From: Auanema rhodensis
Lineage: Eukaryota > Animalia > Nematoda
Length of the DNA: 64,000 bases
Assembly: GCA_964057225.1 (NCBI GenBank)
Contig: OZ059895.1
Location: forward strand, 13,268,001 to 13,332,000
Reading direction: 5' to 3'
Below, piece after piece: positions 26,516 to 58,886 of this stretch. The position numbers and the translations under genes are program-made. The first letter of the stretch is position 1; every line of letters starts with the position of its first letter. The notes under the pieces are model-generated. The model ran no database searches, had not been told where the DNA came from, and was given only the letters and a program-made list of their open reading frames with translations.

Positions 26516-26608
26516 AAAGGTTATATAGAACCGCCGGAGAAATAAATTCCGAAGAACACTGTGTTAAAGGTTATATAGAACCGCCGGAAAAATAAAATTC
26601 CGAAGAAC
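26516..26608 (+). repeat. Two ~42-bp direct repeats in the BEL leader
   Basis: AAAGGTTATATAGAACCGCCGGA(G/A)AAATAAA(A)TTCCGAAGAAC twice, 50-bp period. Confidence 0.85.
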
Positions 26609-26708
26609 TCGTAGAAAATCCGAGTTGACAAGAAATCACTTGTCAAGAAACAATAAGACGATAAAAATATCGCTGAATCTGAAATATCCATTGAGGAAGG
26701 CTAAAATA

Positions 26709-30194: not shown

Positions 30195-33100
30195 CTATCC
30201 CAAGACTAGAACTCATTGCCATACTATTAGGTATTATGTTAGCTGATAATATCACATCTACAACCAATCACCTTAAAACTGTACACGTAGCCAGTGACAG
30301 TAAGGTAGCCTTACATTGGATAGCTAACCATCAGAAAACTTTACCACCATATGTAGGCTGTCGCGTCGACAATGTAAGGAAGTATATAGATAAATTGAAG
30401 GAAAACAACATTAAAATCAAACTTTTTCATGTGAATGGTGATTATAACCCAGCCGATATTGGTTCTCGAGGAGCTTGTCTCCAAGAACTAAGTGATTCTA
30501 TGTGGATTAAAGGACCACAATGGTTAACCCAAACAAAGTCGCACATTGAAGAAATTGAATATGAGCCCATTTGGAATATAACAACCTTGATCGATACCGT
30601 TGAACAACAACAAATAACACAAATACCAGTTGAAGATATATTCAAATTACGTAGCAACAACTATACCTTACTGAAAACTATAGTTAAATTAAGTAAATTC
30701 TTGAGACATTGGATCATAAAAGTACATCCCACAGCTATAACAAGGTTAAATAAAGTAATGCAATTAGATGAAAACTGGCAAACTACAGCTAATGATATTG
30801 AGATTATAACCAAACTACTAATAAGTAAAGCACAACAGCATGTAACAATAGATCTCCTCACGAAAAAACATGAAGGTTTTGTATTTTTTCTCGATGAAGA
30901 AATAATCAGAGTTCGTAGTAGATTGAACAACTCGGAATTACCGTTTGAAACTCAAAATCCCATATATCTTCCAAGGGATTCTCCGTACACAGAACACATA
31001 ATTATGCATTTACACAGAGAATGCATGCACCAAGGAAGAGATTTTGTTCTAACACTCTTGCGTCAAAAATACTTTTTAAATAAACCATCAAGCATAGTCA
31101 GATCAGTTCTCAAAACATGCACAATCTGCAATAGATACAACGCTTTGCCGTTTGGAACGTCCTTAATGCCAGCATTGCCTAAGGATAGAGTAATTCTAAC
31201 AAAACCATTCATGAGTACAGGTTGTGACTTATTAGGTCCAATAACCATAAAGGATGGTAAAAAGATATTTATATGTCTGTTTACTTGTTTAGCTATAAGA
31301 GCTATACACTTAGAAATAGTTTTTGACCAATCAACAAAGGCATTCTTAAACGCTTTCGAAAGGTTCATTGGAAGAAGAGGTATTCCAGAAATAATACGAA
31401 GCGATAATGGAGGAAATTTCTTATTAAGTGCTAAAGTAATAGAATTTTACACAGAAAACCATGAATCTAAAAATGAAAAAACATTAACCAATTATCTTGC
31501 CGAAAAGAATATTAAATGGTACTTCAACACACCACAGGCTCCATGGAAAGGTGGAACATGGGAAAGACTAGTAGGACTAACAAAGTTAGCACTATACAAA
31601 ACAATTGGAAATAGATTAATGTCAATTGATGATATACATACAGTAATTGTAAAAATCGAAACAATTTTGAATACTCGCCCGCTTACACATCCGAACCCAT
31701 CCAACCTGAACATTTTGCCTATCAGACCTTGTGATTTTTTAAACCGTTCCATCAGGTTTACACTTTCTTCAAACGTATCGAATACCCGAATTTATGATAA
31801 AACTATCAATAGCAGGACAATACAAACTATAGAGCAAGCCATTGAAGCAATAGAGTTATCTAACGATGTAACTCAATTATTCTGGAAAAAATTCTATTCA
31901 GAGTATTTACTGTATCTTAGAGATATTTACAAACACAACAGAAAACAACCTGCAACGAACGCTAAGAAACCACAAGAAGGCGAAGTTATTATAATACAAA
32001 ATGAGGATTCAAGTAGAGGTAAATGGAAATTAGGACGCATAATAGAACTAATAAAAAGTGCAGATGGGGAAGTTAGATCTGCAAAACTAATAACTGGCAC
32101 TGGTCTCATAACAACTCGTTCATTAAATCACATATATCCACTAGAAGTGAGAAACGCAGAAGCAGCACCGTTTGCGTCAGAACCTCACTCAATGAGATAC
32201 AATAAAAAATACCAAGTGAATCCATTTTTAATCACCGGGACGGTAACACAAAAAGGAAATCGGGTTGAAAATATTGAAATTATTGAAAATACTCAAGAAA
32301 GTGAACAAAGTAACAATGTAATACCACTCGAAATCTATACACCCAACATTAATATCATCAACGACGCAGGAGACGAAAATGATGCTAATAATACGAACTT
32401 AGAACAAGAGGAAGATCAAACAAATGAGATAACTCTTCAAACCGAAAATGAATCCAAACCTTCAAATCTAAATAGATGGTTCAGAACAAAAACACAGGGT
32501 AGTCAAGCAGCGGTAAGAAGTTATTTTAAGAAAAATAAAATAAAAACAAATGTTCCAAAAGTAGCTCTTCTTGGAATAATTCCAACGATTGAGGCTACAT
32601 GCCAATCCTCTGAATTGCTTACAGCGGAAGTATTATATTTCCCACAATGTAATCCATTAACGACTTTGATAACATTTTTCATACCAATTATACTATTATT
32701 TACTATATTAGCAATTTGTAAAAGAGTATTGAAAGCTCATAAAAATGACCAATATTGGTATAAATTTTTAAATGATAATTGGCAAACGATACAAACCGAA
32801 GTTAGAAGTGGAAAACCTAATTCAAAAATATTAACAAGTTCAGACGATGTAGCCGTACAAAAGGAAAACACAGTAGCCACGAAATTTGACAATGTAACTC
32901 CAAAATGGAAAAATGATATTCCAGAAACTATTAAAATTCCAAATTACATGAGAACATCATCATTCACTTCATTACAATTATCGATAGCACTCATGGTATT
33001 ATTAATAACAGTGGAATCTTGTTCAAACTCACATATTAAGCATTCAATAAATATAATTTGCATTAATCGGACAAATTGTTATCAAGAATACGATAATGAA

Positions 33101-34540
33101 ATCAATTTCAATAAAGGCATAAGAGACGCTTGCTTAGAATTCATTTACCAAAATAAATCTATCGGTAAAATAGAAATAACGAAAAAACCAACAGAATACA
33201 TTTGCCAGAAAAGTACGCTATATTATACTCGAGAAAGCACAATTCAATACAAAACTCGATATTCCTGTTATGGAACAGGATCTTGTAATCACACTTGTGA
33301 AGCTATAAATCCTATTGGACAATTACAAGAATTTGATAAAGAAGAAGGACCAACACAAGTTGGTTGTGCTAGGCGATGTGGCTCTCTTTTCTGCGGATGT
33401 TGGTCTCTAGAAGACGGTTGCTCATTCTATCAAACTGAATTTAAACCAATCAATGAAATAGTTTATGAAATAGTAGAATGTGATTCTTGGGAAATGAATA
33501 TACCATTAGAGGTAAAGTATGATCTATTTAAACACAAAGCCAATATTAATATTCTTTTAAAACCATACGACACTGTTAATTTTCCAAACTTTAATATAAG
33601 CTCAATCTCCCATATTGTACCACCAACCCGATATTTAAACACCAAATATGCATTATCAACCATAAACAGTTATTACATGGAACCTCATACTATGAGTGAA
33701 GTAGCATGCAAAACCAAAGATCAAACTACAAATGAATTTAACTCTTGTAAAATACTGAAGTTATGTAACTGTAAAATATCAAAAAGGGAAGAGCTAACAT
33801 GTACCTGTCCATCTGATAATATTTTCAATCAGGCAAACTTATTACCAATGAACACCAAGAACACCCTAATTACCATGAAAGAAAACAAATTAACACTTAT
33901 TCCTCAAACTGATGAATCAACTGTTGTTCTTCAACTACAAGGGAATGTGTCGTCTCGTACCTTCCTGTACGACTTTCCTTGTCGACCGGAATTTAAAAAA
34001 CTTTCCGGGTGTCACAGCTGTAGAAGAACGGCTGTTGCCGAGTTTATGTGTATATCACAAAAGGATTCTTGGATCACAATGCAATGTAGTGAGAACATAT
34101 ACATGATTGAATGCGCCCCACACATGCCACTTACTGCTGTGGAATATTACTCAGAACATTCTGAAATCTATGAAGAATGCTTCGTAACATGTGCTAATGA
34201 AAAACACCGCGTGATCATACAAGGAACATTACAATGGGATAGTAAAATCCCAGATGTTGAAAAAACAATCATCAACATTGTGACAAATGCTAACACCTGG
34301 AGAAACATTTTGGATGTAATTAAAACAAATTGGGCATTATCATTATGCTTCCTCCTGATAACTGTTTTTATACCAGTATTATCTTATATAATAGGAGTAC
34401 AAGCAATAATTGTAATCATCATAATCATACAAAAATTAATCGTTCAGATGATAAAAATTGTAATGATCATTACATCATTACTGAGAAAAATGCTCAGGAA
34501 TCCTAGACACAGAGCTGAGTCTAGCACAAATAAAAATTAA
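30191..34540 (+). CDS. BEL Pol-Env, part 2 (RNase H, integrase, phlebovirus Gc-like class II fusion glycoprotein)
   Basis: LTIPRLEL, SDSKVALHW, NPADIGSRG RNase H; H-H-CTIC, DLLGP, SDNGGNF, APWKGGTWERLV integrase; Cys-rich Gc with fusion-loop-like CARRCGSLFCGCWSLEDGCSFY and C-terminal TM helices. Confidence 0.92.
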   Translation, partial: LTIPRLELIAILLGIMLADNITSTTNHLKTVHVASDSKVALHWIANHQKTLPPYVGCRVDNVRKYIDKLKENNIKIKLFHVNGDYNPADIGSRGACLQELSDSMWIKGPQWLTQTKSHIEEIEYEPIWNITTLIDTVEQQQITQIPVEDIFKLRSNNYTLLKTIVKLSKFLRHWIIKVHPTAITRLNKVMQLDENWQTTANDIEIITKLLISKAQQHVTIDLLTKKHEGFVFFLDEEIIRVRSRLNNSELPFETQNPIYLPRDSPYTEHIIMHLHRECMHQGRDFVLTLLRQKYFLNKPSSIVRSVLKTCTICNRYNALPFGTSLMPALPKDRVILTKPFMSTGCDLLGPITIKDGKKIFICLFTCLAIRAIHLEIVFDQSTKAFLNAFERFIGRRGIPEIIRSDNGGNFLLSAKVIEFYTENHESKNEKTLTNYLAEKNIKWYFNTPQAPWKGGTWERLVGLTKLALYKTIGNRLMSIDDIHTVIVKIETILNTRPLTHPNPSNLNILPIRPCDFLNRSIRFTLSSNVSNTRIYDKTINSRTIQTIEQAIEAIELSNDVTQLFWKKFYSEYLLYLRDIYKHNRKQPATNAKKPQEGEVIIIQNEDSSRGKWKLGRIIELIKSADGEVRSAKLITGTGLITTRSLNHIYPLEVRNAEAAPFASEPHSMRYNKKYQVNPFLITGTVTQKGNRVENIEIIENTQESEQSNNVIPLEIYTPNINIINDAGDENDANNTNLEQEEDQTNEITLQTENESKPSNLNRWFRTKTQGSQAAVRSYFKKNKIKTNVPKVALLGIIPTIEATCQSSELLTAEVLYFPQCNPLTTLITFFIPIILLFTILAICKRVLKAHKNDQYWYKFLNDNWQTIQTEVRSGKPNSKILTSSDDVAVQKENTVATKFDNVTPKWKNDIPETIKIPNYMRTSSFTSLQLSIALMVLLITVESCSNSHIKHSINIICINRTNCYQEYDNEINFNKGIRDACLEFIYQNKSIGKIEITKKPTEYICQKSTLYYTRESTIQYKTRYSCYGTGSCNHTCEAINPIGQLQEFDKEEGPTQVGCARRCGSLFCGCWSLEDGCSFYQTEFKPINEIVYEIVECDSWEMNIPLEVKYDLFKHKANINILLKPYDTVNFPNFNISSISHIVPPTRYLNTKYALSTINSYYMEPHTMSEVACKTKDQTTNEFNSCKILKLCNCKISKREELTCTCPSDNIFNQANLLPMNTKNTLITMKENKLTLIPQTDESTVVLQLQGNVSSRTFLYDFPCRPEFKKLSGCHSCRRTAVAEFMCISQKDSWITMQCSENIYMIECAPHMPLTAVEYYSEHSEIYEECFVTCANEKHRVIIQGTLQWDSKIPDVEKTIINIVTNANTWRNILDVIKTNWALSLCFLLITVFIPVLSYIIGVQAIIVIIIIIQKLIVQMIKIVMIITSLLRKMLRNPRHRAESSTNKN

Positions 34541-34668
34541 AACACTAATCTTACTGTAGTAATAAAAAAAAAAAAAAAAAAAAAAAACTTTATTAATTAG
34601 CTATAAGAACAGTTTAAAAACACAAAAAAAAAAAAAAAAAAAACAAAAACAAAAACAAAACAAAAACA

Positions 34669-35094
34669 CTATATACTTGAAATATCTGGATACCCCTCAC
34701 CATCATCGTCTGACATCTACAACAATACTTACATTCACAGTTAAAATATATAAGCTTACCTCCTCACGTTCGTGGTGGCGGGGGTTCTTTGCCCTGCAGA
34801 ATCTGCAGTTGGGAGGTAACGGCATCCTCGAGAACATGTAGATGAGCTGCTCCCGAGTTGGCTCGACTCCATCCTCCGGATAAAGCTCATCGTCTGTCAT
34901 CTGCAACAATACTGAGATAAAATAAAATAAACAAATAAATAAATAAATTAAATTAAATTAAAAAAAAATAATAAGCTTACCGGGCCCTCCCGTATGCGAT
35001 GAGTATCTTGCGCCTTGCATCGTTCGCATAGTTCATATGGACCGAGCTCGTCTTCTCCAATCTCCTCTTCAACCTGATACTGTAATTGTGACAT
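34669..35094 (-). CDS. Predicted 3-exon antisense accessory gene of the BEL element (exons 35094-34981, 34900-34760, 34716-34669; 100 aa, acidic, two CxxC-H modules)
   Basis: Each exon is preceded by TTGTTG(C/T)AG and starts with ATG; exons 1 and 2 end at GTAAGCTT donors; exons are 114, 141 and 48 nt (all phase 0); introns 80 and 43 nt. Confidence 0.65.
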
Positions 35095-35541
35095 CTGCAA
35101 CAATTACAACTATAAAAATAAAAAAAAAAAAAATAAAAAATAAAAAATAAAAATAAAGTCAAGAGGGAAGTACAAAAACTTCACGAATACAATAAAAATT
35201 AAATTACTAATCACACGTAGTACAATAGTAAAAAATATAAACAAAGCAAAAATAGGTCATAAAATAATATAAACAAAAGAAAATCACTACATATAGAAAC
35301 AAATGCAACAGTTATAAACAAACAAATCTTTTTATCAAGATCTTCAATCTTTGATAACATCAAGTTTATTTATCCGAATAATATACATAAAAAGTAATCC
35401 TTTGTACAGGCTTTTTTATACATTGTATCCGTAAACACATACTATTCTACAATAAACTAAGGGACGTTTATCATAGGTCAACCCACAGATGCGAACAAAT
35501 ATATAAAGAGGGAAACCATTGTTTTTCTCAATTCAGTGCTA

Positions 35542-36003
35542 ATGGATGAAATAACGTCCAATTTAAGTGAGAACACTTCCTTTGAGGAAGATCTCAAAAA
35601 TTATTCTCATCTACCCAACACCACTGCCAACCTAAGGCAGCTAATGGTTCTAGAGAAGAGGTTTTATGATAACCTCGCCAGCGCTGTCAACCACATTTCC
35701 GCGCGCCTGGATAACATCAACAACACACTGAATCTAAAGCTCGATAATTTAGCTGTTCAGACGGCTCCTAAAGCCTCCTGCATATTCTGCAACAAGCCTA
35801 CAGCTGATGGCCATCGTACAGCTGCTTGTCCGATTTACCCCTCGTCCCCAGAGCGTACCATACGCTTACACGAATTGGGACTATGCATAAAATGTTTGAA
35901 CCCAAAACATTCAGCAATGTGCGAAGTATCCTGCTATAAGTGCAAGGCCGATACTCACCATGGGGTGGTCTGTGGTGACGTCAAACGCAAAAGATATACA
36001 TAA
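35542..36003 (+). CDS. BEL accessory protein: coiled-coil plus triple zinc knuckle (Gag nucleocapsid-like)
   Basis: CIFC...H....C, CIKC....H....C, CYKC....HH...C mirror the Gag knuckles; upstream TATAAAG (~35503) and TTTTTCTCAATTCAG acceptor. Confidence 0.75.
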   Translation: MDEITSNLSENTSFEEDLKNYSHLPNTTANLRQLMVLEKRFYDNLASAVNHISARLDNINNTLNLKLDNLAVQTAPKASCIFCNKPTADGHRTAACPIYPSSPERTIRLHELGLCIKCLNPKHSAMCEVSCYKCKADTHHGVVCGDVKRKRYT

Positions 36004-36012
36004 TGCCGGGAA

Positions 36013-36342
36013 TGTCACGGTCAACGTGAAAATACGAACTTTATTGTGTTAACGTTTTGTTGTATTTTTTGTATTAACTCCACCCCCTTTAACCATCTGG
36101 TGCCTCCCTATAAAAGGGAGAACCAAATGGTTAAAATTTTTATGTCTCACCAATTTTGTTTTGATTTTAGGAATTTCTTGGAAATTCGTAAATCAATCCA
36201 CTTGTTCAATTTACTGTTGTTGCATTTTGTTGAATAAACCTTTCTTCATTTAACTTGTCTTAACGCATAATACCGCACTCATACGAACCGACTCCATACT
36301 TGGACTGATACTTGGAGGTAATAGTCCAGTTGTCAAACGACA
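36013..36342 (+). repeat. BEL 3' LTR
   Basis: Copy of 26131-26460, preceded by GCCGGGAA. Confidence 0.95.
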
Positions 36343-36398
36343 GGGCCCGGTTAGTACTTGGATCGGAGACGGCTTGGGAATCCCGGGTGCCGTAAGCT
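36343..36398 (+). pseudogene. 5S rRNA 3' part (nt 64-119) after the BEL insertion
   Basis: GGGCCCGGTTAGTAC...GTAAGCT resumes the 5S gene. Confidence 0.95.
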
Positions 36399-36723
36399 TT
36401 TCAATTTTTTTTAACGATCATACCACGTTGAAAGTACGCAATGCAGCTGATTTTCAATTTTATCTCTTCCGTAACAAATGTTTTTAATTTTCTAGCAGTT
36501 TTACTTAGATAGCTCAACCCAAGGCATCAAAATATCTTCAATCTTATTTCTATATTACAGTTATAAACCAGTAGTTTATGAACCTTCATCTTAACTTTAC
36601 TGTTTCTATCTATTTCCTATTGAAACAAACATTGTTTTAACACTATACAACTGTGAAACCTTTTTTAATTTATTGTATTTGGAGCTCATAAGATTTGATA
36701 TCATCGAAGAATTTAGATGTAAC

Positions 36724-37136
36724 TGTTCCATACGTGTCCTATAAGTAGAGCGATTGACAACGTCAATCGCTTATAAAACGGAACATTATAAAAACAAATA
36801 GCTGACGCTACATTTGAGAAACAGGAATTCAATGCAATAAAGAACGAACACTTTTTCATATTAAGTTTAATCAAAGAAAGCCCAATTCAAGCGGAACCAA
36901 GTTCCGCGGACCTGATATAACGACTTTTTATGCTCGTAAGGAAAACTATATAAGTTTTCCTTACGAGTCCTTTGGGCTGCGACTAGGAATCATTATGTAA
37001 CTTTTATTATTGTAATTTGTATACTTTATCATGAATAAACCTTTCTCTCTATACTCTTTATCATTTATATTTGGAAGAAAAGAAAGTAATTCCATGTGGT
37101 TACCCAGCCGGAACCCTGGGGAACCACCATGGAACG
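36724..37136 (+). repeat. 5' LTR (413 bp, TGTTCC...GGAACG), copy 1
   Basis: Matches 45184-45590, 46144-46556 (rc), 55090-55502 and 63546-63958. Confidence 0.94.
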
Positions 37137-37155
37137 TGGAGGTTCCGCCGAGATT
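37137..37155 (+). promoter_or_regulatory. Primer-binding site, tRNA-Gln type
   Basis: TGGAGGTTCCGCCGAGATT directly after the LTR; complement of the tRNA-Gln 3' end. Confidence 0.88.
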
Positions 37156-39623
37156 CGTCTATAACCGACGAATCTCTAAGAACCATATTTCGCTACATAA
37201 ATTTAATTTTGTTGTCTTTCATACATCTAATTAAAGAATTATATTTCGATTATGCTATATGAATTTAATTTGAAATCTTTCTCTTCTTTATTTCATTCAT
37301 TCAAAAAAACTTTATTTTGATTTTGATTCATAAATTAATACTGAAATCTTATATACATTTATTTAAAAAGATATATTTTGAAACAACTTAATTTTGAAAT
37401 TTTATATTCATTCATTTAAAAGAAACATTTCGATTTTTATCCATATTCTAAGATCTTTCATTCATTTTTGAGGAAAAACTTTGTTTATAACTATCATAAA
37501 TTAATTTGAAATTCTTTTATATTTATTCATTCAAAGAAAGGTATTTCGATATTTTTTTTTCTGTCAATCTTTTCTTTTTCTGTTTTTTTAATCAAAATCT
37601 ATTCTATCTCTCATAAAATTTTGTTATAAAGTTTCAAACAATTTTTGAATCAAAAATGAATTAATTTCTTTCATGAATCATCAAAAAATTCATTGTTTTA
37701 TATATATTAAAATTCATTAATTTCTATTCTATCCTTTAAAATGTATTACTCATTTATATATATATATATATTTATGTACAAAACTATTCTATACTAGTAC
37801 TATATTCCTACTATATTCCTACTATATTCCTATTTTATTTTTCTTTTATCTTCTTTTAAATTTTATCTTTTTCCCTCTCTTATTACTATTATTTTTTTTC
37901 TTCTTCCTAATATAACCCAGAAAACAGCCAAATAATTTTGAAATTTTTTATCTGAATCCCGAACCTAAGATTTACAATTTTGCATTTTGATCCTAAAAGT
38001 AGCCCGTGAGAAGCAATACCAGACTGTCTCGAGAACTGAGCGGAGGCAACCACTATTTTTGATATAAGACGTACGCATTCCTGATTTTGAAGATCCCTTT
38101 ACAGAATTAGTCGAGAATGAAAGTGTTAGAGTGGTCTCACCATGAAAAATCAGGGGAGCAGAATTTCGTTAAGGGAGCGATTTCTGTAATTTTTCATAGG
38201 CAAGAGAAGTCTGGGAAAGTGAATGTTCGAGGCCTGAGCACCTAATCTTGTCGAAAGACTGAAAGGGAATACTGCTTAGATCACCGTCGTATATTTCACG
38301 CCTATTCGAGAGATGGGAACTTGATCCTAGAAAGGGCGCACCGGTCACAGGCCCGTGTATGTACCCGATTGAGCAATTCTCCGTTAGAAGATTCGCTGCA
38401 GGCTGGCCCCCTAGCAAGCGTCACGCATACAACCCCATATTGCCTCTCACGTTGTATATATATTTTTATAAGTTTCGCATCGTTGGTATAATAATTTCCT
38501 TTCCAGGAAAACCAACAAGATGACGGACTCGAAGAGTAAAAATCCTCCGCAGGATAAAACAAATCCACAGAGCGCAGCCCCCCGGTAATGATACGCACGT
38601 CGAGCCAGTACTCGAGCAGAATCAAAGAAAGAGAGGACCTCCAAATGTTTATGAGCCGGACACGAAGCGCCGACCTACTGCTGCAAAGAAACCACCCGCT
38701 ATACCGGGTACCCCCGCGAAAAAAAATAGGCACAACAGCTATCAAAACTTCTCGCCACGCTATTACTCTTAGTAAAATTAAAACGTCTATTAACAAACAA
38801 ACTCCTAAACGCAATTCTAACGTTATCAAAAGCTCTAGCTATGTTTGCACAAATACTTCCCCTTGTAAAGATTATTCTCAAATATCATTTTCATACCCAA
38901 ATACTGCTATTCTTTCTTCTCCTCTTCCTCGAAATTCACCAAACTATCAGAGAAAATAGAAGAAAACGCAAGAAAAGAATTGTATGAGGAACGGAAGAAG
39001 GAGCCACCCACAATTAAGAAATGGAGTTCAGCACTTAAATTGGCATTGGGATTAGAAGATAATTCTCCTACAACGCCAGCAAAGCCTTATCATGTGCCGA
39101 TAAGGTATCACAGCACCATACCAGTAACAGAGCCGAAGAAGAGAGTTTCGAAGAGTCCGATCCCGGACCCAAACTTCGTGGCACCAACAGTACCAGTCAT
39201 CCATAAGAAAAGACCGTCAACAGTTATTGGGACTACAAGTAAGAAGCTAGAACAATAGTAAAAATCCATAATTTCTATATAAAAATCACAAAAAGTATAA
39301 TACCATTTTCATAATTTTCATCTAAACTTGAACCTATATATGATTTTTTTTTCTCATTTAAGTAAGACATAAAATTCTACACAAATTATTGTACATTTTT
39401 ATTTTTTCACTCTCATAAAAATATTGTATCAATAACCAAAATTTCAAAATAAAATTATACATCATACTTGGAATCTTTCAAAAATCACTGCAAAGTTTTA
39501 ATCAACAATCTTCATCATTTTTTTTCACCTAACTGGTCAAAAAGGAGGCGACAAAAAGGAAGGAACAGACCGACCTAGTTTTAAAAAGGATAAAAAGGAC
39601 AGAAAACAGTAACAAAGATAACA

Positions 39624-40226
39624 ATGTCCACCCAACTCCCTGAAGCCGTCGAAATTCCCCTCATGATGGCCAAAAAGAGATGGCTTTCAATTCAACTATT
39701 AGTAAGAGAATTGAAGCAGCTAGGCGCCAATACCATCGCCAACCGCCCCAGGAAAGAGAAGATCCTGAAAGAGTTAGTTCAAGGACTAACAAGAGCGAAC
39801 ACCAGTACTGAAACGCTCAAAATCCTATGTTACCAATACGACAAGGATCAACTGTCGGAGGTTGACCACTGCATAGGACCATGGACCAACACAGCAGGAG
39901 TCATCCGAGATGCCATTGCTGAACTAAGGGACCAACTAGGTTATTCACCTAGTTGCGATTCACCAGAACAGCAGACACCAAACTGGATTATTGCTGAGAC
40001 CCATTCGGCCTATCAAGAATGGAGCCTGCAACATTGCAGCGAACTGCCATCCACAGAGGCAAGAAAAAGCATTTTAAATGCTCTACAAATATTTCTGGCA
40101 TCACCAGCAACCACCAAGGAAGAAATGGAAAGAAAAACGGATTTATGCAACAAGACTATGGATCTTCTCCACGACCTAGGATCATCACCATTACCAGAGA
40201 TACACCAGTATTATGAAGAATACTAA
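39624..40226 (+). CDS. 200-aa hypothetical, probably helical protein of the non-autonomous element
   Basis: Clean ATG-to-stop ORF, GC-richer than its flanks, open in all three copies; no recognisable domain. Confidence 0.6.
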   Translation: MSTQLPEAVEIPLMMAKKRWLSIQLLVRELKQLGANTIANRPRKEKILKELVQGLTRANTSTETLKILCYQYDKDQLSEVDHCIGPWTNTAGVIRDAIAELRDQLGYSPSCDSPEQQTPNWIIAETHSAYQEWSLQHCSELPSTEARKSILNALQIFLASPATTKEEMERKTDLCNKTMDLLHDLGSSPLPEIHQYYEEY

Positions 40227-40479
40227 AAAGAACTTTTGAAAGATTCCCAGTATGATATATGATATATTATTTTGTAATTACATTGTTTTCCTTTATTTTT
40301 TTCTCATAAAATTGTTCTGTATTATCAGTATTCTTTTATTTTTTTGAAACATTTCATACAACTTTCACATTTGCATGGAATTTCACTTTCTCGATGTAGC
40401 TGAGGTCAGCTACTTTTTCGATATTAGGCATGTTCCATACGTGTCCTATAAGTAGAGCGATTGACAACGTCGATTGCTT
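40222..40479 (+). repeat. Duplicated pre-LTR segment plus first ~49 nt of LTR (upstream flank of the viral insert)
   Basis: Direct repeat of 44977-45232; truncated LTR begins TGTTCCATACG at 40431. Confidence 0.92.
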
Positions 40480-40524
40480 TTCTCCTTCTACTAGATTGAC
40501 ACTTTATTGTGTCACCTGGTAGTT

Positions 40525-43500
40525 ATGGATGACTGCACGGCCGTTTCGTCTAATAACTTAATTGTTATGGACGACACCGGTTACCGATCTGAAAAATTTC
40601 CAACAGATGATAAATGTATGGGAGACTTTCTTTTATCCGTATCAGCGGATAAAAATTTTGATCCCGTCCTTAAAAATGTAATCCTTAACAACCCAAATAG
40701 TAGTGTTGCAGCAGCTGTTAAAGCCAGTGTATTGGACAACCGTATGAAGTGAATTAATTTTGACTCTTCGGGACGAATTTTGATTAGATTACAACAGATT
40801 TTATCTAGTGAACAATTACAAGACATTCAAAAAAATTTTTCTTGTTTTAGAATTGAGACCAGTAACACCGATGGTGGACCTCATTCACTAGCTCGTGCCT
40901 TACGCACTGTAGCTTTTTACTACATAAGATACCAATTCTTTCGCTCTTTGGAAATGTTCAAGACATTAACACCCAGCGGTAAATACCATGTAGTACAAAA
41001 GGATATAGGATCAAATCCCATGCAGTTTGTTAATAGTGGCTTTTACTCCGTTCACTGTTGCTGTCCAGTTGTGAACACGGCTGACGTTTTTAGACGTAAT
41101 AATTACGTAGCTCAAGCAACTATGATTGTGAATAATTCCTTTGATAGCAATAAAGTTTATCATTGTAAAAAAATACTCTCTATGGATTCTAATTATATTT
41201 GTTCTCAACTTTCCCAGTACTGTAAGATAAAAGCCCCTTTTGTATCCTTTTTACATTCTGTTTATGATCTTTCTCCAGCTGACATTGTTCAGACCTTAGA
41301 TAACTGTGAAGCTATTAGGGCCGTCGGAGTTATATTATTCGACCCCGTTGTTTTAATTAAAAAAAATGGTATGTTACCAGATATTGACGCATCTTTTACC
41401 CGCTATAAACAGTTTGGAGTCGAATATATTAGATTCTCATTTGATAACGATGTTCAATTGTGTTACACTCATCGTTGGGACACTTATATTTTTATCATAA
41501 AAGCTTTTGTTCTAACTTCTACCACCTCTTTATATAGTTATGCGGTGGCTGGGCTATTACAATTTAAGAGTCATTTTTTCTTTGACATTGCAAGGATTGA
41601 CACTTCTATTCCCCGTCATATTAGCGGGCGTACTTTTAAATTGAACTCCGACAAAAAATCCTATATTCGTACATACGATTTTGATGAATCTTCATCTTTT
41701 TTTAAAACCAAAAATAAATTGAAATATGCTTATATCTGTGTATCAACTAGCTTGTTTGAAAACATGTTAAAACATGGTATGACCTTGGGTGAGGGTAAAT
41801 TCACCGTCAAAAATATCCTGTCAATGGGTATTTCTCTTGATAGTCGTGTTGTAGTCAATGGACAAACAATCTCCAGTTCTGACGAACGACATTCTGCTGA
41901 TACTCTCCGAATACTGGCTCATACTGTTTATATGCTAATTTATGTCAGCAATTACAGTTCAACTAAGACTATAAAGGAATTGACGGATGACATTTCTATT
42001 TCTAGATCTTTATCCTTATTTCCCCGGTTCACCCGTTTATTCTCCATGATGAAGTATTCCGACAAGACCGAAAACCTATTGTCCGCCATGTCTAAAGCTC
42101 ATGACAATGACCTTACAGTGTCATCAATGTCAGACCAGACTGTTTGCGACGACACATCTCGGATGAAGGGTTGGCGGGATTGTGTACTGGGCGGGACTCT
42201 TTATGATATAAAGATTTTCCGTAATATCGGTTATATTGATATTGACCGACAGGTTTCCCAACTTGTCCATCGCGAAGTACGGAAGACTATTGACCATCCC
42301 CTATATAAATTGTGGTTGCCTAATGACTTCGAATGTTCATCTGGTGAAGATTCTGATGAGTATTTTGATGCAGAAGAGGGTGTTATTGATACTTCGACGT
42401 CTTTTGAACCGGTATCTGTGTCGGTTTCACATTCCTGCCAAAGTAACGTTGAAATTATCCCCACTCCTGGTGACGGCGACTGTCTTTTTCACGCTTTGAG
42501 ACTTACGGGTGCTACTACCGATAGTCCACCATCAATTCGTGATAAACTTAGCCATGCCCCTAACATCGGTGAGAAGACAAAGAATCTTCTGTTAGCCGGT
42601 ATTAACGATCCCTCTAATGTTGATAATTGGGGAACAGATGAGCATATTGAGTTGTTCAGTGGTCTATACCGTGTTAAGATTTGCTTACACGATACTTCCA
42701 CTGGTCAGTTTCGACTTTATACTCCTCGTACGCTAGCATCTGAACAATTATATCACGTTCATTATACGCCTGGTCATTTTTCTGCTTTGAAAGTTTGTCC
42801 GAACCGTTTGATGGTATTAACATCTGACGATGTGTTCGATTGTAACGACGCTCCTTTGATTGATAAATTCAGAGACATTTATGACAAAACTTTTGAGAAT
42901 GTCTCTAATCGTAAACATAAGCTGATTAAAAACATAATGACTCCTACATCTAATATCGGCACTGGAGGATACATTTGTCGCTCGGCCTTAAAACTGTGCG
43001 AATTACACGCCTTTGGGCTGATCGATTTCTGTTATGTCGATATAATCGACTTATGTTCTAGCCCCGGAGGGTTTTCTGAATATTTATTACATAACTCTAA
43101 CAGTTTTATTCATGCTGTGCCTGGACCTAAATCCATGTTAATATTCGATAACCGTTTAACTCCCTATTGTGACCCTGTAACAAGATCGTCAAATTTGCTT
43201 GATGACGATATTCGAAACTCTATGGTTGAATTAATAAAGAAGAACACCAATGACAGACTACTTATTTTAGCTGACGGAGCCATATCTGAAACAGCTGTTA
43301 ATCCTCTTCTTCGTGCTGACAATAACTATGATCTCATTTATGCTGAAATCTCCACCGCATTCGATCTATTGCATGATAACGGCAAATTGGTTATTAAACT
43401 GTTTTACCCTTATGCTATTAGTACTCAGATTTTATTGCGCCGATTACTTTCGAGATTTGCGAAATTAACGGTTCTTTTCTTGTCTACCTCCACACCTATT

Positions 43501-44994
43501 TCTTGTGAATTTTATGTTTTATGTGAGGGGTATACTAAATCCGAAATTGTAAGATCTGATTTTAACTACACCGGGTTTTTCCGCTCCGTTTGTAACAATT
43601 TTGATATAAAAAGATCGGACGGATTAAATACCTATCTTCAATATAGTAAATATTACGACACTCTTGATAAAAAAATCAAGGATATATCCGGTAAGGACTT
43701 CCCTTTCAATCATTGCGATATTGAACTAGAATCCACATTACGCAAGTACCTAAAACCTCAAAAATTTTTGGGTTTATATGGTGGTGGTCTTGTAAGCTCA
43801 AAACCGTCATGTGATCCAGTCTTAGATCCAGATGTGTGCGAAACAGAGGATGTTATCTCTCGTCATCACGAGTTGTCCCCGTATAATTTAATTTGCGTTG
43901 ATCAGGGAATTGCAAAGCCCTTTATTTATTGGTACTTAAAGAAGAGGGTCGAGACACTTGGTGATTCCGATCTTCTACGTGCTGTTGAGACTTCCAACGA
44001 TGATTTTTATCGTCTGCATAAATACTTCGTCGCGAAAAAGTATACCGACATGGTATTATCTCAAGAAGCTATTAGATATTTTGAGAGATTGGTAAATTTC
44101 TCAATTGAATCCCATATTATTCATCCACCGTTGGATCCTGTTTTCTTATCTTTTGACAGACAATTGGGAATGTCTGGAAATTTAGGTGAAAACTTTTATG
44201 GTAACTGGTTGCGGCGTACTCCACTTACAGAATTGGAAGAGACTAAATTTACTGATGTATTACCAGAAATATCGGTTGTTAAACCAATATTTACGTCGAC
44301 ACCAGATGCTACCCAAGACACTACTTTCACCTTTAATGTAAAAAAAACCAAATTTCTCAAATTTTCGTATTTAAATCTATTTGTTGGTGGCGCCTTTTCC
44401 TATTATTGCTTAAATAACCTCTATAAACGTTCGTATTTTATAGATTCGCATCACAACCAATGTGTTAATTCTTTGTATAACTTATTATCAGTTCATAATG
44501 TATATAACAGTCTCCCTAAATCCATTTGTATGTCTAATATTATTTTTAATAATTTATGTAGAAATTCTGTAAAATATGATTTTATATCCTCTACAGTCGC
44601 ACAACAGGTTCACGTTGATTCAAAATTTAATGCCACCGCAATATTTTCGGGCATTGCAGCCCTGTTAAGATTTTTGACTGCCTTTCGAATTGACTCAACT
44701 GAGGAACTTGTTCCTAATGACTACAACGCCGGTAATACCATTAAAGATAAACACCATCCACACACTATGTTCTCAACAACTCTCTTCAACGGTGTTAGAG
44801 AATATATCGCTACCAAATTGCGTAAGTCTAGGGCTAATGAATCTGACACTTCAGAAAATGTGATCGATGATATCCAAAAAACGTCAGCAACTATCCCAAC
44901 TCCGATTTTAAATAATACTACACCCTTTAATGATGCAATTGAAGAGTATGCCGAATATTTGACATTATATTCTAAGACTAAAAAGGACTTTTGA
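40525..44994 (+). pseudogene. Endogenous viral element: 5' part of a nege/kita/virga-like (Martellivirales) replicase (capping MTase/GTase, OTU protease, FtsJ 2'-O-MTase); in-frame TGA at 40750; truncated before helicase/RdRp; copy 1
   Basis: PHSLARALR, KDIGSN, VHCCCP...DVFRR, LHSVYD, FSF...YTH match the tobamovirus-like MTase; PGDGDCLFHAL...WG...GHFSAL is an OTU motif set; RSALKL, DLCSSPGGF, LADG, VIKLF, SCEFY give the K-D-K-E FtsJ tetrad. ORFs 40507-40752 and 40780-44994 are in the same frame. Confidence 0.93.
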
Positions 44995-45183
44995 AAGATT
45001 CCCAGTATGATATATGATATACTATTTTGTAATTACATTGTTTTCCTTCATTTTTTCTCATAAAATTGTTCTGTATTATCAGTATTCTTTTATTTTTTGA
45101 AACATTTCATACAACTTTCATATTAGCATGGAATTTCACTTTCTCGATGTAGCTGAGGTCAGCTACTTTTTCGATAGTAGGCA

Positions 45184-45590
45184 TGTTCCATACGTGTCCT
45201 ATAAGTAGAGCGATTGACAACGTCAATCGCTTATAAAACGGAACATTATAAAAACAAATAGCTGACGCTACATTTGAGAAACAGGAATTCAATGCAATAA
45301 AGAACGAACACTTTTTCATATTAAGTTTAATCAAAGAAAGCCCAATTCAAGCGGAACCAAGTTCCGCGGACCTGATATAACGACTTTTTATGCTCGTAAG
45401 GAAAACTATATGAGTTTTCCTTACGAGTCCTTTGGGCTGCGACTAGGAATCATTATGTTATTATTGTAATTTGTATACTTTATCATGAATAAACCTTTCT
45501 CTCTATACTCTTTATCATTTATATTTGGAAGAAAAGAAAGTAATTCCATGTGGTTACCCAGCCGGAACCCTGGGGAACCACCATGGAACG
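45184..45590 (+). repeat. 3' LTR, copy 1 (407 bp)
   Basis: Differs from the 5' LTR by a 6-bp deletion and one substitution; followed by TAAC TSD. Confidence 0.94.
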
Positions 45591-45679
45591 TAACGTAGAA
45601 AATTACATAACTAACATGAAATTGGAAAAAAAACAATAACGAGGATAAGTATGTAAATCATTGAATATCAGGTATTTTC

Positions 45680-45798
45680 GCTTACGACCATACCACGTTG
45701 AAAGTACGCCATCCCGTCCGATCTGGCAAGTCAAGCAACGTTGGGCCCGGTTAGTACTTGGATCGGAGACGGCTTGGGAATCCCGGGTGCCGTAAGCT
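45680..45798 (+). rRNA. 5S rRNA: 5S rRNA
   Basis: Same 119-nt gene. Confidence 0.97.
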
Positions 45799-46016
45799 TT
45801 TCAATTTTTTTTAACGATCATACCACGTTGAAAGTACGCAATGCAGCTGATTTTCAATTTTATCTCTTCCGTAACAAATGTTTTTAATTTTCTAGCAGTT
45901 TTACTTAGATAGCTCAACCCAAGGCATCAAAATATCTTCAATCTTATTTCTATATTACAGTTATAAACCAGTAGTTTATGAACCTTCATCTTAACTTTAC
46001 TGTTTGTGTTTACTTT

Positions 46017-46054
46017 ACGGGATGGCGTACTTTCAACGTGGTATGGTCGTAAGC
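46017..46054 (-). pseudogene. Inverted 5S fragment (nt 1-38) at the inversion breakpoint
   Basis: ACGGGATGGCGTAC...GTAAGC is the reverse complement of the 5S 5' end. Confidence 0.92.
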
Positions 46055-46745
46055 GAAAATATCTGATATTCAATGATTTACATACTTATCCTCGTTATTG
46101 TTTTTTTTCCAATTTCATGTTAGTTATGTAATTTTCTACGTTACGTTCCATGGTGGTTCCCCAGGGTTCCGGCTGGGTAACCACATGGAATTACTTTCTT
46201 TTCTTCCAAATATAAATGATTAAGAGTATAGAGAGAAAGGTTTATTCATGATAAAGTATACAAATTACAATAATAAAAGTTACATAATGATTCCTAGTCG
46301 CAGCCCAAAGGACTCGTAAGGAAAACTTATATAGTTTTCCTTACGAGCATAAAAAGTCGTTATATCAGGTCCGCGGAACTTGGTTCCGCTTGAATTGGGC
46401 TTTCTTTGATTAAACTTAATATGAAAAAGTGTTCGTTCTTTATTGCATTGAATTCCTGTTTCTCAAATGTAGCGTCAGCTATTTGTTTTTATAATGTTCC
46501 GTTTTATAAGCGATTGACGTTGTCAATCGCTCTACTTATAGGACACGTATGGAACATGCCTACTATCGAAAAAGTAGCTGACCTCAGCTACATCGAGAAA
46601 GTGAAATTCCATGCTAATATGAAAGTTGTATGAAATGTTTCAAAAAATAAAAGAATACTGATAATACAGAACAATTTTATGAGAAAAAATGAAGGAAAAC
46701 AATGTAATTACAAAATAATATATCATATATCATACTGGGAATCTT

Positions 46746-49700
46746 TCAAAAGACCTTTTTAGTCTTAGAATATAATGTCAAATATTCGGCATACTCTTCA
46801 ATTGCATCATTAAAGGGTGTAGTATTATTTAAAATCGGAGTTGGGATAGTTGCTGACGTTTTTTGGATATCATCGATCACATTTTCTGAAGTGTCAGATT
46901 CATTAGCCCTAGACTTACGCAATTTGGTAGCGATATATTCTCTAACACCGTTGAAGAGAGTTGTTGAGAACATAGTGTGTGGATGGTGTTTATCTTTAAT
47001 GGTATTACCGGCGTTGTAGTCATTAGGAACAAGTTCCTCAGTTGAGTCAATTCGAAAGGCAGTCAAAAATCTTAACAGGGCTGCAATGCCCGAAAATATT
47101 GCGGTGGCATTAAATTTTGAATCAACGTGAACCTGTTGTGCGACTGTAGAGGATATAAAATCATATTTTACAGAATTTCGACATAAATTATTAAAAATAA
47201 TATTAGACATACAAATGGATTTAGGGAGACTGTTATATACATTATGAACTGATAATAAGTTATACAAAGAATTAACACATTGGTTGTGATGCGAATCTAT
47301 AAAATACGAACGTTTATAGAGGTTATTTAAGCAATAATAGGAAAAGGCGCCACCAACAAATAGATTTAAATACGAAAATTTGAGAAATTTGGTTTTTTTT
47401 ACATTAAAGGTGAAAGTAGTGTCTTGGGTAGCATCTGGTGTCGACGTAAATATTGGTTTAACAACCGATATTTCTGGTAATACATCAGTAAATTTAGTCT
47501 CTTCCAATTCTGTAAGTGGAGTACGCCGCAACCAGTTACCATAAAAGTTTTCACCTAAATTTCCAGACATTCCCAATTGTCTGTCAAAAGATAAGAAAAC
47601 AGGATCCAACGGTGGATGAATAATATGGGATTCAATTGAGAAATTTACCAATCTCTCAAAATATCTAATAGCTTCTTGAGATAATACCATGTCGGTATAC
47701 TTTTTCGCGACGAAGTATTTATGCAGACGATAAAAATCATCGTTGGAAGTCTCAACAGCACGTAGAAGATCGGAATCACCAAGTGTCTCGACCCTCTTCT
47801 TTAAGTACCAATAAATAAAGGGCTTTGCAATTCCCTGATCAACGCAAATTAAATTATACGGGGACAACTCGTGATGACGAGAGATAACATCCTCTGTTTC
47901 GCACACATCTGGATCTAAGACTGGATCACATGACGGTTTTGAGCTTACAAGACCACCACCATATAAACCCAAAAATTTTTGAGGTTTTAGGTACTTGCGT
48001 AATGTGGATTCTAGTTCAATATCGCAATGATTGAAAGGGAAGTCCTTACCGGATATATCCTTGATTTTTTTATCAAGAGTGTCGTAATATTTACTATATT
48101 GAAGATAGGTATTTAATCCGTCCGATCTTTTTATATCAAAATTGTTACAAACGGAGCGGAAAAACCCGGTGTAGTTAAAATCAGATCTTACAATTTCGGA
48201 TTTAGTATACCCCTCACATAAAACATAAAATTCACAAGAAATAGGTGTGGAGGTAGACAAGAAAAGAACCGTTAATTTCGCAAATCTCGAAAGTAATCGG
48301 CGCAATAAAATCTGAGTACTAATAGCATAAGGGTAAAACAGTTTAATAACCAATTTGCCGTTATCATGCAATAGATCGAATGCGGTGGAGATTTCAGCAT
48401 AAATGAGATCATAGTTATTGTCAGCACGAAGAAAAGGATTAACAGCTGTTTCAGATATGGCTCCGTCAGCTAAAATAAGTAGTCTGTCATTGGTGTTCTT
48501 CTTTATTAATTCAACCATAGAGTTTCGAATATCGTCATCAAGCAAATTTGACGATCTTGTTACAGGGTCACAATAGGGAGTTAAACGGTTATCGAATATT
48601 AACATGGATTTAGGTCCAGGCACAGCATGAATAAAACTGTTAGAGTTATGTAATAAATATTCAGAAAACCCTCCGGGGCTAGAACATAAGTCGATTATAT
48701 CGACATAACAGAAATCGATCAGCCCAAAGGCGTGTAATTCGCACAGTTTTAAGGCCGAGCGACAAATGTATCCTCCAGTGCCGATATTAGATGTAGGAGT
48801 CATTATGTTTTTAATCAGCTTATGTTTACGATTAGAGACATTCTCAAAAGTTTTGTCATAAATGTCTCTGAATTTATCAATCAAAGGAGCGTCGTTACAA
48901 TCGAACACATCGTCAGATGTTAATACCATCAAACGGTTCGGACAAACTTTCAAAGCAGAAAAATGACCAGGCGTATAATGAACGTGATATAATTGTTCAG
49001 ATGCTAGCGTACGAGGAGTATAAAGTCGAAACTGACCAGTGGAAGTATCGTGTAAGCAAATCTTAACACGGTATAGACCACTGAACAACTCAATATGCTC
49101 ATCTGTTCCCCAATTATCAACATTAGAGGGATCGTTAATACCGGCTAACAGAAGATTCTTTGTCTTCTCACCGATGTTAGGGGCATGGCTAAGTTTATCA
49201 CGAATTGATGGTGGACTATCGGTAGTAGCACCCGTAAGTCTCAAAGCGTGAAAAAGACAGTCGCCGTCACCAGGAGTGGGGATAATTTCAACGTTACTTT
49301 GGCAGGAATGTGAAACCGACACAGATACCGGTTCAAAAGACGTCGAAGTATCAATAACACCCTCTTCTGCATCAAAATACTCATCAGAATCTTCACCAGA
49401 TGAACATTCGAAGTCATTAGGCAACCACAATTTATATAGGGGATGGTCAATAGTCTTCCGTACTTCGCGATGGACAAGTTGGGAAACCTGTCGGTCAATA
49501 TCAATATAACCGATATTACGGAAAATCTTTATATCATAAAGAGTCCCGCCCAGTACACAATCCCGCCAACCCTTCATCCGAGATGTGTCGTCGCAAACAG
49601 TCTGGTCTGACATTGATGACACTGTAAGGTCATTGTCATGAGCTTTAGACATGGCGGACAATAGGTTTTCGGTCTTGTCGGAATACTTCATCATGGAGAA

Positions 49701-51215
49701 TAAACGGGTGAACCGGGGAAATAAGGATAAAGATCTAGAAATAGAAATGTCATCCGTCAATTCCTTTATAGTCTTAGTTGAACTGTAATTGCTGACATAA
49801 ATTAGCATATAAACAGTATGAGCCAGTATTCGGAGAGTATCAGCAGAATGTCGTTCGTCAGAACTGGAGATTGTTTGTCCATTGACTACAACACGACTAT
49901 CAAGAGAAATACCCATTGACAGGATATTTTTGACGGTGAATTTACCCTCACCCAAGGTCATACCATGTTTTAACATGTTTTCAAACAAGCTAGTTGATAC
50001 ACAGATATAAGCATATTTCAATTTATTTTTGGTTTTAAAAAAAGATGAAGATTCATCAAAATCGTATGTACGAATATAGGATTTTTTGTCGGAGTTCAAT
50101 TTAAAAGTACGCCCGCTAATATGACGGGGAATAGAAGTGTCAATCCTTGCAATGTCAAAGAAAAAATGACTCTTAAATTGTAATAGCCCAGCCACCGCAT
50201 AACTATATAAAGAGGTGGTAGAAGTTAGAACAAAAGCTTTTATGATAAAAATATAAGTGTCCCAACGATGAGTGTAACACAATTGAACATCGTTATCAAA
50301 TGAGAATCTAATATATTCGACTCCAAACTGTTTATAGCGGGTAAAAGATGCGTCAATATCTGGTAACATACCATTTTTTTTAATTAAAACAACGGGGTCG
50401 AATAATATAACTCCGACGGCCCTAATAGCTTCACAGTTATCTAAGGTCTGAACAATGTCAGCTGGAGAAAGATCATAAACAGAATGTAAAAAGGATACAA
50501 AAGGGGCTTTTATCTTACAGTACTGGGAAAGTTGAGAACAAATATAATTAGAATCCATAGAGAGTATTTTTTTACAATGATAAACTTTATTGCTATCAAA
50601 GGAATTATTCACAATCATAGTTGCTTGAGCTACGTAATTATTACGTCTAAAAACGTCAGCCGTGTTCACAACTGGACAGCAACAGTGAACGGAGTAAAAG
50701 CCACTATTAACAAACTGCATGGGATTTGATCCTATATCCTTTTGTACTACATGGTATTTACCGCTGGGTGTTAATGTCTTGAACATTTCCAAAGAGCGAA
50801 AGAATTGGTATCTTATGTAGTAAAAAGCTACAGTGCGTAAGGCACGAGCTAGTGAATGAGGTCCACCATCGGTGTTACTGGTCTCAATTCTAAAACAAGA
50901 AAAATTTTTTTGAATGTCTTGTAATTGTTCACTAGATAAAATCTGTTGTAATCTAATCAAAATTCGTCCCGAAGAGTCAAAATTAATTCACTTCATACGG
51001 TTGTCCAATACACTGGCTTTAACAGCTGCTGCAACACTACTATTTGGGTTGTTAAGGATTACATTTTTAAGGACGGGATCAAAATTTTTATCCGCTGATA
51101 CGGATAAAAGAAAGTCTCCCATACATTTATCATCTGTTGGAAATTTTTCAGATCGGTAACCGGTGTCGTCCATAACAATTAAGTTATTAGACGAAACGGC
51201 CGTGCAGTCATCCAT
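46746..51215 (-). pseudogene. Endogenous viral replicase fragment, copy 2
   Basis: Near-identical to copy 1 (NPFL vs NPLL; KKVF vs KKDF); same in-frame stop. Confidence 0.93.
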
Positions 51216-51513
51216 AACTACCAGGTGACACAATAAAGTGTCAATCTAGTAGAAGGAGAAAAGCAATCGACGTTGTCAATCGCTCTACTTATAGGACACG
51301 TATGGAACATGCCTAATATCGAAAAAGTAGCTGACCTCAGCTACATCGAGAAAGTGAAATTCCATGCAAATGTGAAAGTTGTATGAAATGTTTCAAAAAA
51401 ATAAAAGAATACTGATAATACAGAACAATTTTATGAGAAAAAAATAAAGGAAAACAATGTAATTACAAAATAATATATCATATATCATACTGGGAATCTT
51501 TCAAAAGTTCTTT

Positions 51514-52116
51514 TTAGTATTCTTCATAATACTGGTGTATCTCTGGTAATGGTGATGATCCTAGGTCGTGGAGAAGATCCATAGTCTTGTTGCATAAATC
51601 CGTTTTTCTTTCCATTTCTTCCTTGGTGGTTGCTGGTGATGCCAGAAATATTTGTAGAGCATTTAAAATGCTTTTTCTTCCCTCTGTGGATGGCAGTTCG
51701 CTGCAATGTTGCAGGCTCCATTCTTGATAGGCCGAATGGGTCTCAGCAATAATCCAGTTTGGTGTCTGCTGTTCTGGTGAATCGCAACTAGGTGAATAAC
51801 CTAGTTGGTCCCTTAGTTCAGCAATGGCATCTCGGATGACTCCTGCTGTGTTGGTCCATGGTCCTATGCAGTGGTCAACCTCCGACAGTTGATCCTTGTC
51901 GTATTGGTAACATAGGATTTTGAGCGTTTCAGTACTGGTGTTCGCTCTTGTTAGTCCTTGAACTAACTCTTTCAGGATCTTCTCTTTCCTGGGGCGGTTG
52001 GCGATGGTATTGGCGCCTAGCTGCTTCAATTCTCTTACTAATAGTTGAATTGAAAGCCATCTCTTTTTGGCCATCATGAGGGGAATTTCGACGGCTTCAG
52101 GGAGTTGGGTGGACAT
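51514..52116 (-). CDS. 200-aa hypothetical protein, copy 2
   Basis: One amino-acid difference from copy 1 (TEGRK vs TEARK). Confidence 0.6.
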   Translation of the reverse strand: MSTQLPEAVEIPLMMAKKRWLSIQLLVRELKQLGANTIANRPRKEKILKELVQGLTRANTSTETLKILCYQYDKDQLSEVDHCIGPWTNTAGVIRDAIAELRDQLGYSPSCDSPEQQTPNWIIAETHSAYQEWSLQHCSELPSTEGRKSILNALQIFLASPATTKEEMERKTDLCNKTMDLLHDLGSSPLPEIHQYYEEY

Positions 52117-54645: not shown

Positions 54646-54764
54646 GCTTACGACCATACCACGTTGAAAGTACGCCATCCCGTCCGATCTGGCAAGTCAA
54701 GCAACGTTGGGCCCGGTTAGTACTTGGATCGGAGACGGCTTGGGAATCCCGGGTGCCGTAAGCT
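54646..54764 (+). rRNA. 5S rRNA: 5S rRNA
   Basis: Same 119-nt gene, intact. Confidence 0.97.
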
Positions 54765-57700: not shown

Positions 57701-57985
57701 TATGATTTTTTTTTCTCATTTAAGTAAGACATAAAATTCTACACAAATTATTGTACATTTTTATTTTTTCACTCTCATAAAAATATTGTATCAATAACCA
57801 AAATTTCAAAATAAAATTATACATCATACTTGGAATCTTTCAAAAATCACTGCAAAGTTTTAATCAACAATCTTCATCATTTTTTTTCACCTAACTGGTC
57901 AAAAAGGAGGCGACAAAAAGGAAGGAACAGACCGACCTAGTTTTAAAAAGGATAAAAAGGACAGAAAACAGTAACAAAGATAACA

Positions 57986-58588: not shown

Positions 58589-58886
58589 AAAGAACTTTTG
58601 AAAGATTCCCAGTATGATATATGATATATTATTTTGTAATTACATTGTTTTCCTTTATTTTTTTCTCATAAAATTGTTCTGTATTATCAGTATTCTTTTA
58701 TTTTTTTGAAACATTTCATACAACTTTCACATTTGCATGGAATTTCACTTTCTCGATGTAGCTGAGGTCAGCTACTTTTTCGATATTAGGCATGTTCCAT
58801 ACGTGTCCTATAAGTAGAGCGATTGACAACGTCGATTGCTTTTCTCCTTCTACTAGATTGACACTTTATTGTGTCACCTGGTAGTT

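Follow-up and report, generated by a model that had tools for sequence, protein, structure and literature searches.

LTR elements within a 5S rDNA array

Much of the 64-kb window (the whole stretch of DNA that was analyzed) is occupied by what had been read as a "529-bp satellite". This repeat is a 5S rDNA array, with 30 matches to the Rfam 5S_rRNA family. Three kinds of LTR element lie in the array: a Ty3/gypsy element, a BEL/Pao element and a virus-carrying element that is present in three copies. The first two are:

3962-15427, plus strand: autonomous Ty3/gypsy element, with LTRs at 3962-4298 and 15091-15427
26131-36342: BEL/Pao element, carrying a Phlebovirus_G2 domain

The Ty3/gypsy element encodes gag, a fusion-glycoprotein domain of the gB/Monjiviricetes type, protease, RT, RNase H and integrase in a single long ORF. 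The best relatives of its pol that have the same architecture are found in Caenorhabditis, Diploscapter and Auanema, at 49-58% identity, and a rhabditid nematode is accordingly the probable host.

Copy 1 of the virus-carrying element spans 36724-45590. It is a defective, non-autonomous element of the Ty3/gypsy type and is flanked by the TSD TAAC. Outside the virus insert and the repeats that bracket it, copy 1 and its flanks are made up as follows:

36720-36723, plus strand: left TSD TAAC, within the 5S rDNA spacer
36724-37136, plus strand: 5' LTR, 413 nt, TGTTCC...GGAACG
37137-37149, plus strand: PBS-like TGGAGGTTCCGCC, 12 of its 13 nt agree with the PBS at 4299 in the autonomous Ty3/gypsy element
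37150-39623: element interior without gag or pol
39624-40226, plus strand: the element's own 200-aa ORF, an orphan whose stop lies inside the left ACTAAAAAG
45184-45590, plus strand: 3' LTR, 407 nt, with a private 6-bp deletion
45591-45594, plus strand: right TSD TAAC

Because the uninterrupted spacer reads GATGTAACGTAG, copy 1 represents a real integration with a 4-bp duplication. The virus insert thus sits in host chromosomal DNA, as it lies within an LTR element that has a TSD and is itself embedded in the 5S rDNA array.

The 5' LTR of copy 1 contains TATAAAA at LTR nt 50-56 and AATAAA at 37034-37039. For gag and pol, the virus-carrying element gave neither a Pfam match nor similarity to the polyproteins of the window, and it is called non-autonomous because it has no gag or pol of its own. 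Searches with the 200-aa ORF returned no Pfam family, no exact database record and no homologue; a single-sequence AlphaFold model of it is all-helical, with a low-confidence pLDDT of 57. Other family members were sought in metagenome contigs by exact-pattern matching, which gave 0 hits both for a 28-mer from the repeat core and for a 23-mer spanning LTR end and PBS.

The ends of the virus-carrying element resemble those of the autonomous gypsy element. Both have the same kind of LTR termini (TGTTCC...GGAACG in the former, CGTTCC...GGAACG in the latter), GGCA before the 3' LTR, 12 of 13 PBS nucleotides in common and a 4-bp TSD. The PPT of the virus-carrying element is not clearly purine-rich, and only GGCA precedes its 3' LTR. 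At the DNA level, the element interior showed no similarity to either of the two autonomous elements, gypsy or BEL/Pao. The tie to Ty3/gypsy enzymes is one of short common termini and PBS. From the common end features we infer that the virus-carrying element is a non-autonomous partner of the Ty3/gypsy family at 3962-15427, and this autonomous element is the likely source of an RT and integrase acting in trans.

The viral replicase fragment

The insert, which has the same sense as the element, derives from a nege-like RNA virus and comprises its first ~4.5 kb. In copy 1 it consists of:

40480-40524, plus strand: unique stretch of 45 nt that separates the truncated LTR from the viral ATG, presumably viral 5' untranslated sequence
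40525-44994, plus strand: replicase gene of a nege-like virus, 5' part only, with methyltransferase-region homology and FtsJ; its final bases overlap the right repeat

A word-indexed protein search with the viral ORF gave no match. A full HMMER scan with the viral protein returned 246 matches at E<=0.001, the best of them at E=8e-82, and this establishes the viral identity of the insert. The best matches are proteins of 2200-2600 aa with FtsJ, Viral_helicase1 (superfamily-1) and RdRP_2 domains, and the relatives that bear names are insect nege-like viruses and negeviruses together with two flatworm-associated viruses. The alignment to the best match (P0001) covers its residues 53-986 at ~30% identity, and for this reason the viral N-terminus, and with it the coding 5' end, is taken to be essentially complete. 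FtsJ was detected in the viral protein as PF01728 (E=5.6e-16). Pfam Vmethyltransf was undetected at E<=10, and the corresponding region aligns to the domain that Pfam does detect in the relatives P0003 (86-413) and P0004 (120-395).

Searches for helicase and RdRP_2 in the viral gene found neither, and the insert ends upstream of both. The last ~460 aa of the viral protein match nothing and hold no helicase. Since the helicase of the relatives starts at about residue 1400-1570, we place the end of the insert in the variable linker before it. The viral gene is a fragment of a nege-like replicase gene and not a complete one.

In all three copies the fragment has a single in-frame stop and is free of frameshifts. 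Nine of its homopolymer runs are at least 6 nt long and none of them has given rise to a frameshift; both runs of this kind in the flanking repeats differ in length between the repeat copies. Among 56 relatives, 28 residues are common to at least 90%, and the viral gene keeps 28 of 28; real viruses used as yardsticks keep 26-28, these 28 columns having little power to separate a young from an old capture.

The direct repeat, its junctions and the three copies

The virus insert had been described from the sequence as bracketed by a direct repeat of the element's own 3' region, and we recovered this repeat at 40222-40479 and 44977-45232. The features that bear on its history are:

40222-40479, plus strand: left direct repeat, 258 nt, consisting of the element 3' region and LTR nt 1-49 (40431-40479)
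44977-45232, plus strand: right direct repeat, 256 nt
46144-54606, minus strand: copy 2, inverted, with the same 3' flank, both repeats and the viral gene, and lacking both a 5' LTR and PBS nt 1-10
55090-63958, plus strand: copy 3, complete, with flanks and TSD as in copy 1

The repeated unit takes in the element 3' region together with the PPT position and runs on into LTR nt 1-49. Both junctions lie where the sequence-only reading had put them. On the right, the repeat begins at ACTAAAAAG; the stop of the 200-aa ORF falls inside the left 9-mer, while the viral frame passes through the right 9-mer and stops at 44992-44994. On the left, LTR identity ends at 40479 and is followed by the 45 unique nt up to the viral ATG at 40525. 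An element origin of these 45 nt was considered and set aside, as they have no other match within the window. The two virus-element junctions are direct and colinear with the element RNA. The accompanying claim of a virus-element microhomology at ACTAAAAAG goes further than the sequence does: this 9-mer is common to two repeat copies that are both element-derived, and the closest virus protein is 31% identical.

The three copies of the element have common flanks and one insertion point in the 5S rDNA unit. They are segmental duplicates within the rDNA array that go back to one integration event, and the shared flanks and insertion point are the reason why we count them as one event and not as independent evidence. 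Near-identical copies inside a tandem array, one of them inverted and ending abruptly without a 5' LTR (copy 2), are also what might be seen if the junctions or the three-copy palindrome had been mis-assembled in repetitive rDNA. A mis-join between virus and genome would not, however, yield a 258-nt repeat with seven fixed differences, intact LTRs and a TSD, and the copies contain private substitutions. We therefore regard an assembly artefact as very improbable.

The two repeats had been reported to differ at about six substitutions and two T-run indels, in the same way in all three copies. The two one-T indels were found as described, but copy 1 has eight substitutions, and the uniformity among copies is not complete. 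Seven substitutions and both indels are common to all three; one further substitution is private to copy 1 and another to copies 2 and 3 (alignment A1). The left repeat is identical across the three element copies. Three of the seven common substitutions lie no more than 10 nt from the junction ends (P=0.013, post hoc), and part of the "haplotype" difference between the repeats may accordingly be junction-associated, arising by imperfect annealing or misincorporation. If so, the LTR part would shrink to 41 nt and the viral leader would lengthen to 53 nt. As a source of seven substitutions in 258 nt, RT error in a single cycle was rejected, the number being far too high. Hypermutation of the editing type was rejected as well, since the changes are mixed (five transitions of several kinds and two transversions).

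For the 413-bp LTR pairs, a difference at only one or two sites had been proposed. This holds for copy 3, the pair of which differs by one substitution; the pair of copy 1 differs by one substitution and the 6-bp deletion, and copy 2 offers no pair as it has no 5' LTR. Over the five LTRs there are three substitutions and one 6-bp deletion, each private to one LTR, and the 5' LTR of copy 1 is identical to the 3' LTR of copy 3. Because every difference is private, the ancestral 5' and 3' LTRs must have been identical. The excess of repeat over LTR divergence that had been noted from the sequence was borne out (7/258 versus 0/413, Fisher P=0.0012), also with the three junction-proximal substitutions set aside (P=0.018). 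Given the undiverged ancestral LTRs, the divergence of the repeats is older than the last integration.

How much older is a separate matter. LTRs are regenerated at each retrotransposition, and their identity dates the last cycle only; internal repeats are not reset in this way. The chimera may therefore have formed earlier, at another locus and by any route, and have retrotransposed since. Its repeats would then have diverged by ordinary mutation and RT error, the same contrast between repeats and LTRs would result because LTRs are renewed in each cycle and internal repeats are not, and no pair of diverged RNAs would be needed. The clean TSD speaks for a composite that integrated as a unit, and a single stop is compatible with the expectation of such an old-capture model (P of at most one stop, 0.17-0.67). 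However, the viral gene has stayed free of frameshifts through its long homopolymer runs when both repeat runs vary in length, and it has retained all of the highly conserved residues. In addition, retroviral direct repeats of 110-250 bp are lost at ~16-41% per cycle, and more when they lie far apart (PMC3187697); with direct repeats so unstable in reverse transcription, the insert would be expected to be lost fast over many cycles. These points tell against an older capture but none of them decides the matter; we give it about one chance in four.

The two diverged repeats could also be explained at the DNA level, again without co-packaging, if the element was already resident in the genome and a virus-element chimera arrived as cDNA, either recombining with this copy or inserting into its 3' end. 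Of the two repeats, the left would then be the resident and the right the incoming one, and it fits this idea that the left repeat ends within the LTR, as a truncated resident LTR would. The incoming 3' LTR would, however, have had to replace the resident LTR exactly, leaving one TSD and identical LTRs, and more steps would be needed than for a single RT product. Assembly at the DNA level thus appears improbable to us.

Proposed capture by template switching and its known parallels

The insert is in sense orientation, complete on its viral 5' side and cut internally on its 3' side, and it is accompanied by the repeat, intact LTRs and a TSD. Such an anatomy fits two non-homologous switches, and the double template switch proposed by the sequence-only reading remains the best account of it. 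We assign a probability of roughly 0.6 to the reading that a non-autonomous LTR element, mobilized by a Ty3/gypsy-type RT, acquired ~4.5 kb from the 5' end of a nege-like plus-strand RNA virus by copy choice in minus-strand synthesis.

On this reading, DNA synthesis would have set out from the 3' LTR of one element RNA, crossed the PPT position and copied the 3' region. Having reached the A-run in ACTAAAAAG, it would have switched to the viral genomic RNA and copied this towards the viral 5' end, starting at an internal position that lies upstream of the sequence for the helicase. At or near this end the enzyme would have been forced back to an element RNA, landing 41-49 nt into U3. The landing site would lie ~258 nt behind the take-off point, and the stretch in between would be copied twice. 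A second element RNA is called for because the same stretch is copied twice (RNase H/copy-choice model, PMC3187697): RNase H destroys the copied template, and the second landing would most likely have been on another molecule. The finished cDNA would then have been integrated once in the 5S rDNA spacer with the 4-bp duplication, and rearrangement within the array would have raised the number of copies to three, including one that is inverted and truncated. We infer the order in which the switches took place, the involvement of a second RNA and the identity of the element that gave the enzymes.

What did not stand as it had been put is the claim of two diverged co-packaged RNAs, for the reason that LTR identity dates the last retrotransposition only. 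Two different co-packaged element RNAs are plausible. That the two templates were already ~2-3% diverged in the same capture event is a more tentative proposition, to which we give somewhat less than an even chance.

Endogenous fragments of RNA viruses are mostly found in an eroded state in which the joins to the carrier retroelement are gone, and their origin has been argued mainly from hybrids found in cell culture. As germline records of RNA-virus capture by LTR retroelements go, the locus described here is unusually complete. One capture product is seemingly whole, with both joins, the repeat, identical LTRs and the TSD, and offers a step-by-step record of RT template jumping. Should both repeat types occur in empty elements, the locus would document a Ty3/gypsy-type particle that contained two distinct element RNAs alongside a virus genome. 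The locus further brings a nege-like virus into the record of what is probably a rhabditid nematode. The composite might be a still-mobile, virus-gene-carrying retroelement, with the near-intact capping-enzyme gene or its transcripts kept and multiplied in the 5S array for the benefit of host or element. We give this idea little credence; if the composite were useful, it might for instance give rise to antiviral small RNAs.

Events of this kind are already known, and what is new here is a nege-like virus in a probable nematode, borne by a non-autonomous carrier at a 5S rDNA site. Geuking and colleagues reportedly described in 2009 an LCMV-IAP recombinant cDNA in mouse cells that arose by illegitimate recombination during reverse transcription and was then integrated. 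That case likewise joins an exogenous RNA virus to an LTR retroelement in the course of reverse transcription, followed by integration. In contrast to the LCMV-IAP recombinant, which is somatic, experimental and mammalian, the copy described here is fixed and has element sequence duplicated around its insert.

Retroviral transduction and duplication provide a second parallel, with insertions and duplications that arise by RT switching, are favored by homopolymers, show junction errors and come from particles in which two RNAs are packaged (PMC3187697). In that system, RT switching is promoted by homopolymer runs, errors are present at ~6% of the recombination junctions, and copy choice is driven by RNase H (PMC3187697). 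Here the captured RNA is a virus genome and not a host mRNA, and the enzymes are of the Ty3/gypsy type, whereas the published rates are retroviral.

Replicase fragments of alpha-like viruses that are endogenised and associated with retrotransposons are also known from insects, both as virga/nege-like EVEs (Kondo et al. 2017, as cited in PMC6338049) and as retrotransposons holding viral helicase domains (PMC5563155). Unlike these, the fragment described here resides in a non-insect host and its nearest relatives are ~30% identical. It comprises the methyltransferase/FtsJ part and not the helicase, and it is unfused to a retrotransposon protein.

A further likeness is to the vDNA and EVEs of insects, where copy-choice hybrids of LTR-retrotransposon RNA and RNA-virus RNA have been documented in mosquito cells (PMC6797480). 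Examples are hybrids of SINV or CFAV with Ty3/gypsy or Ty1, and a CFAV EVE in Aag2 cells that is flanked by a Ty3/gypsy LTR and gag (PMC6797480). As in the present case, non-retroviral RNA-virus sequence is joined directly to an LTR retrotransposon at a repeat-rich locus, and RT template switching is the accepted cause. The case presented here differs from the insect examples in its non-autonomous carrier, nematode host, nege-like virus and 5S rDNA site, and in that both junctions, the flanking repeat, the intact LTRs and the TSD are all preserved.

The 5S rDNA array as host of LTR elements

The 529-bp tandem repeat represents a 5S rDNA array, as seen from 30 Rfam 5S_rRNA matches, and neither SL RNA nor any further RNA gene besides 5S was found within the 529-bp unit.

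1-4000, 15400-26130, 36343-36719, 45595-46143 and 54607-55089: segments of the 5S rDNA array, 529-bp unit (Rfam 5S_rRNA)

All three LTR elements of the window are hosted by 5S rDNA units (insertion starts at 3962, 26131 and 36724). The sites of the two Ty3/gypsy-type elements, one autonomous with its own gag and pol and one non-autonomous with the nege-like virus insert, are spacer positions ~46 and ~89 nt upstream of the 5S gene, and the BEL/Pao element sits within a 5S gene (partial 5S match at 26063-26150). Pol III genes may be preferred targets of the LTR elements inserted in 5S units. Alternatively, the array may simply tolerate insertions.

Palindrome and orphan ORF of the non-autonomous element

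Copies 1 and 2 of the non-autonomous element form a large palindrome around window positions 45458-46276; its centre spans ~300 nt and contains a single 5S gene. At its truncated end, copy 2 stops 10 nt inside the primer-binding site and directly adjoins 5S spacer (54572-54640), and this join lies 2-3 nt from the spacer position used by the autonomous element in another unit. A comparison with 5.8 billion proteins gave no homologue of the 200-aa ORF (39624-40226), nor did the ORF match any Pfam family; an all-helical fold was predicted with low confidence.

Fusion-glycoprotein domains in the other two elements

The LTRs of the BEL/Pao element (26131-36342; 330 nt) are 100% identical to each other, from which its insertion is judged to be very recent. 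Downstream of its integrase it carries a Phlebovirus_G2 fusion domain. The autonomous Ty3/gypsy element (3962-15427) has a single long ORF with a gB/Monjiviricetes-type fusion-glycoprotein domain in frame with pol, located after gag and before the protease. Caenorhabditis, Diploscapter and Auanema also have predicted proteins with the identical domain set.
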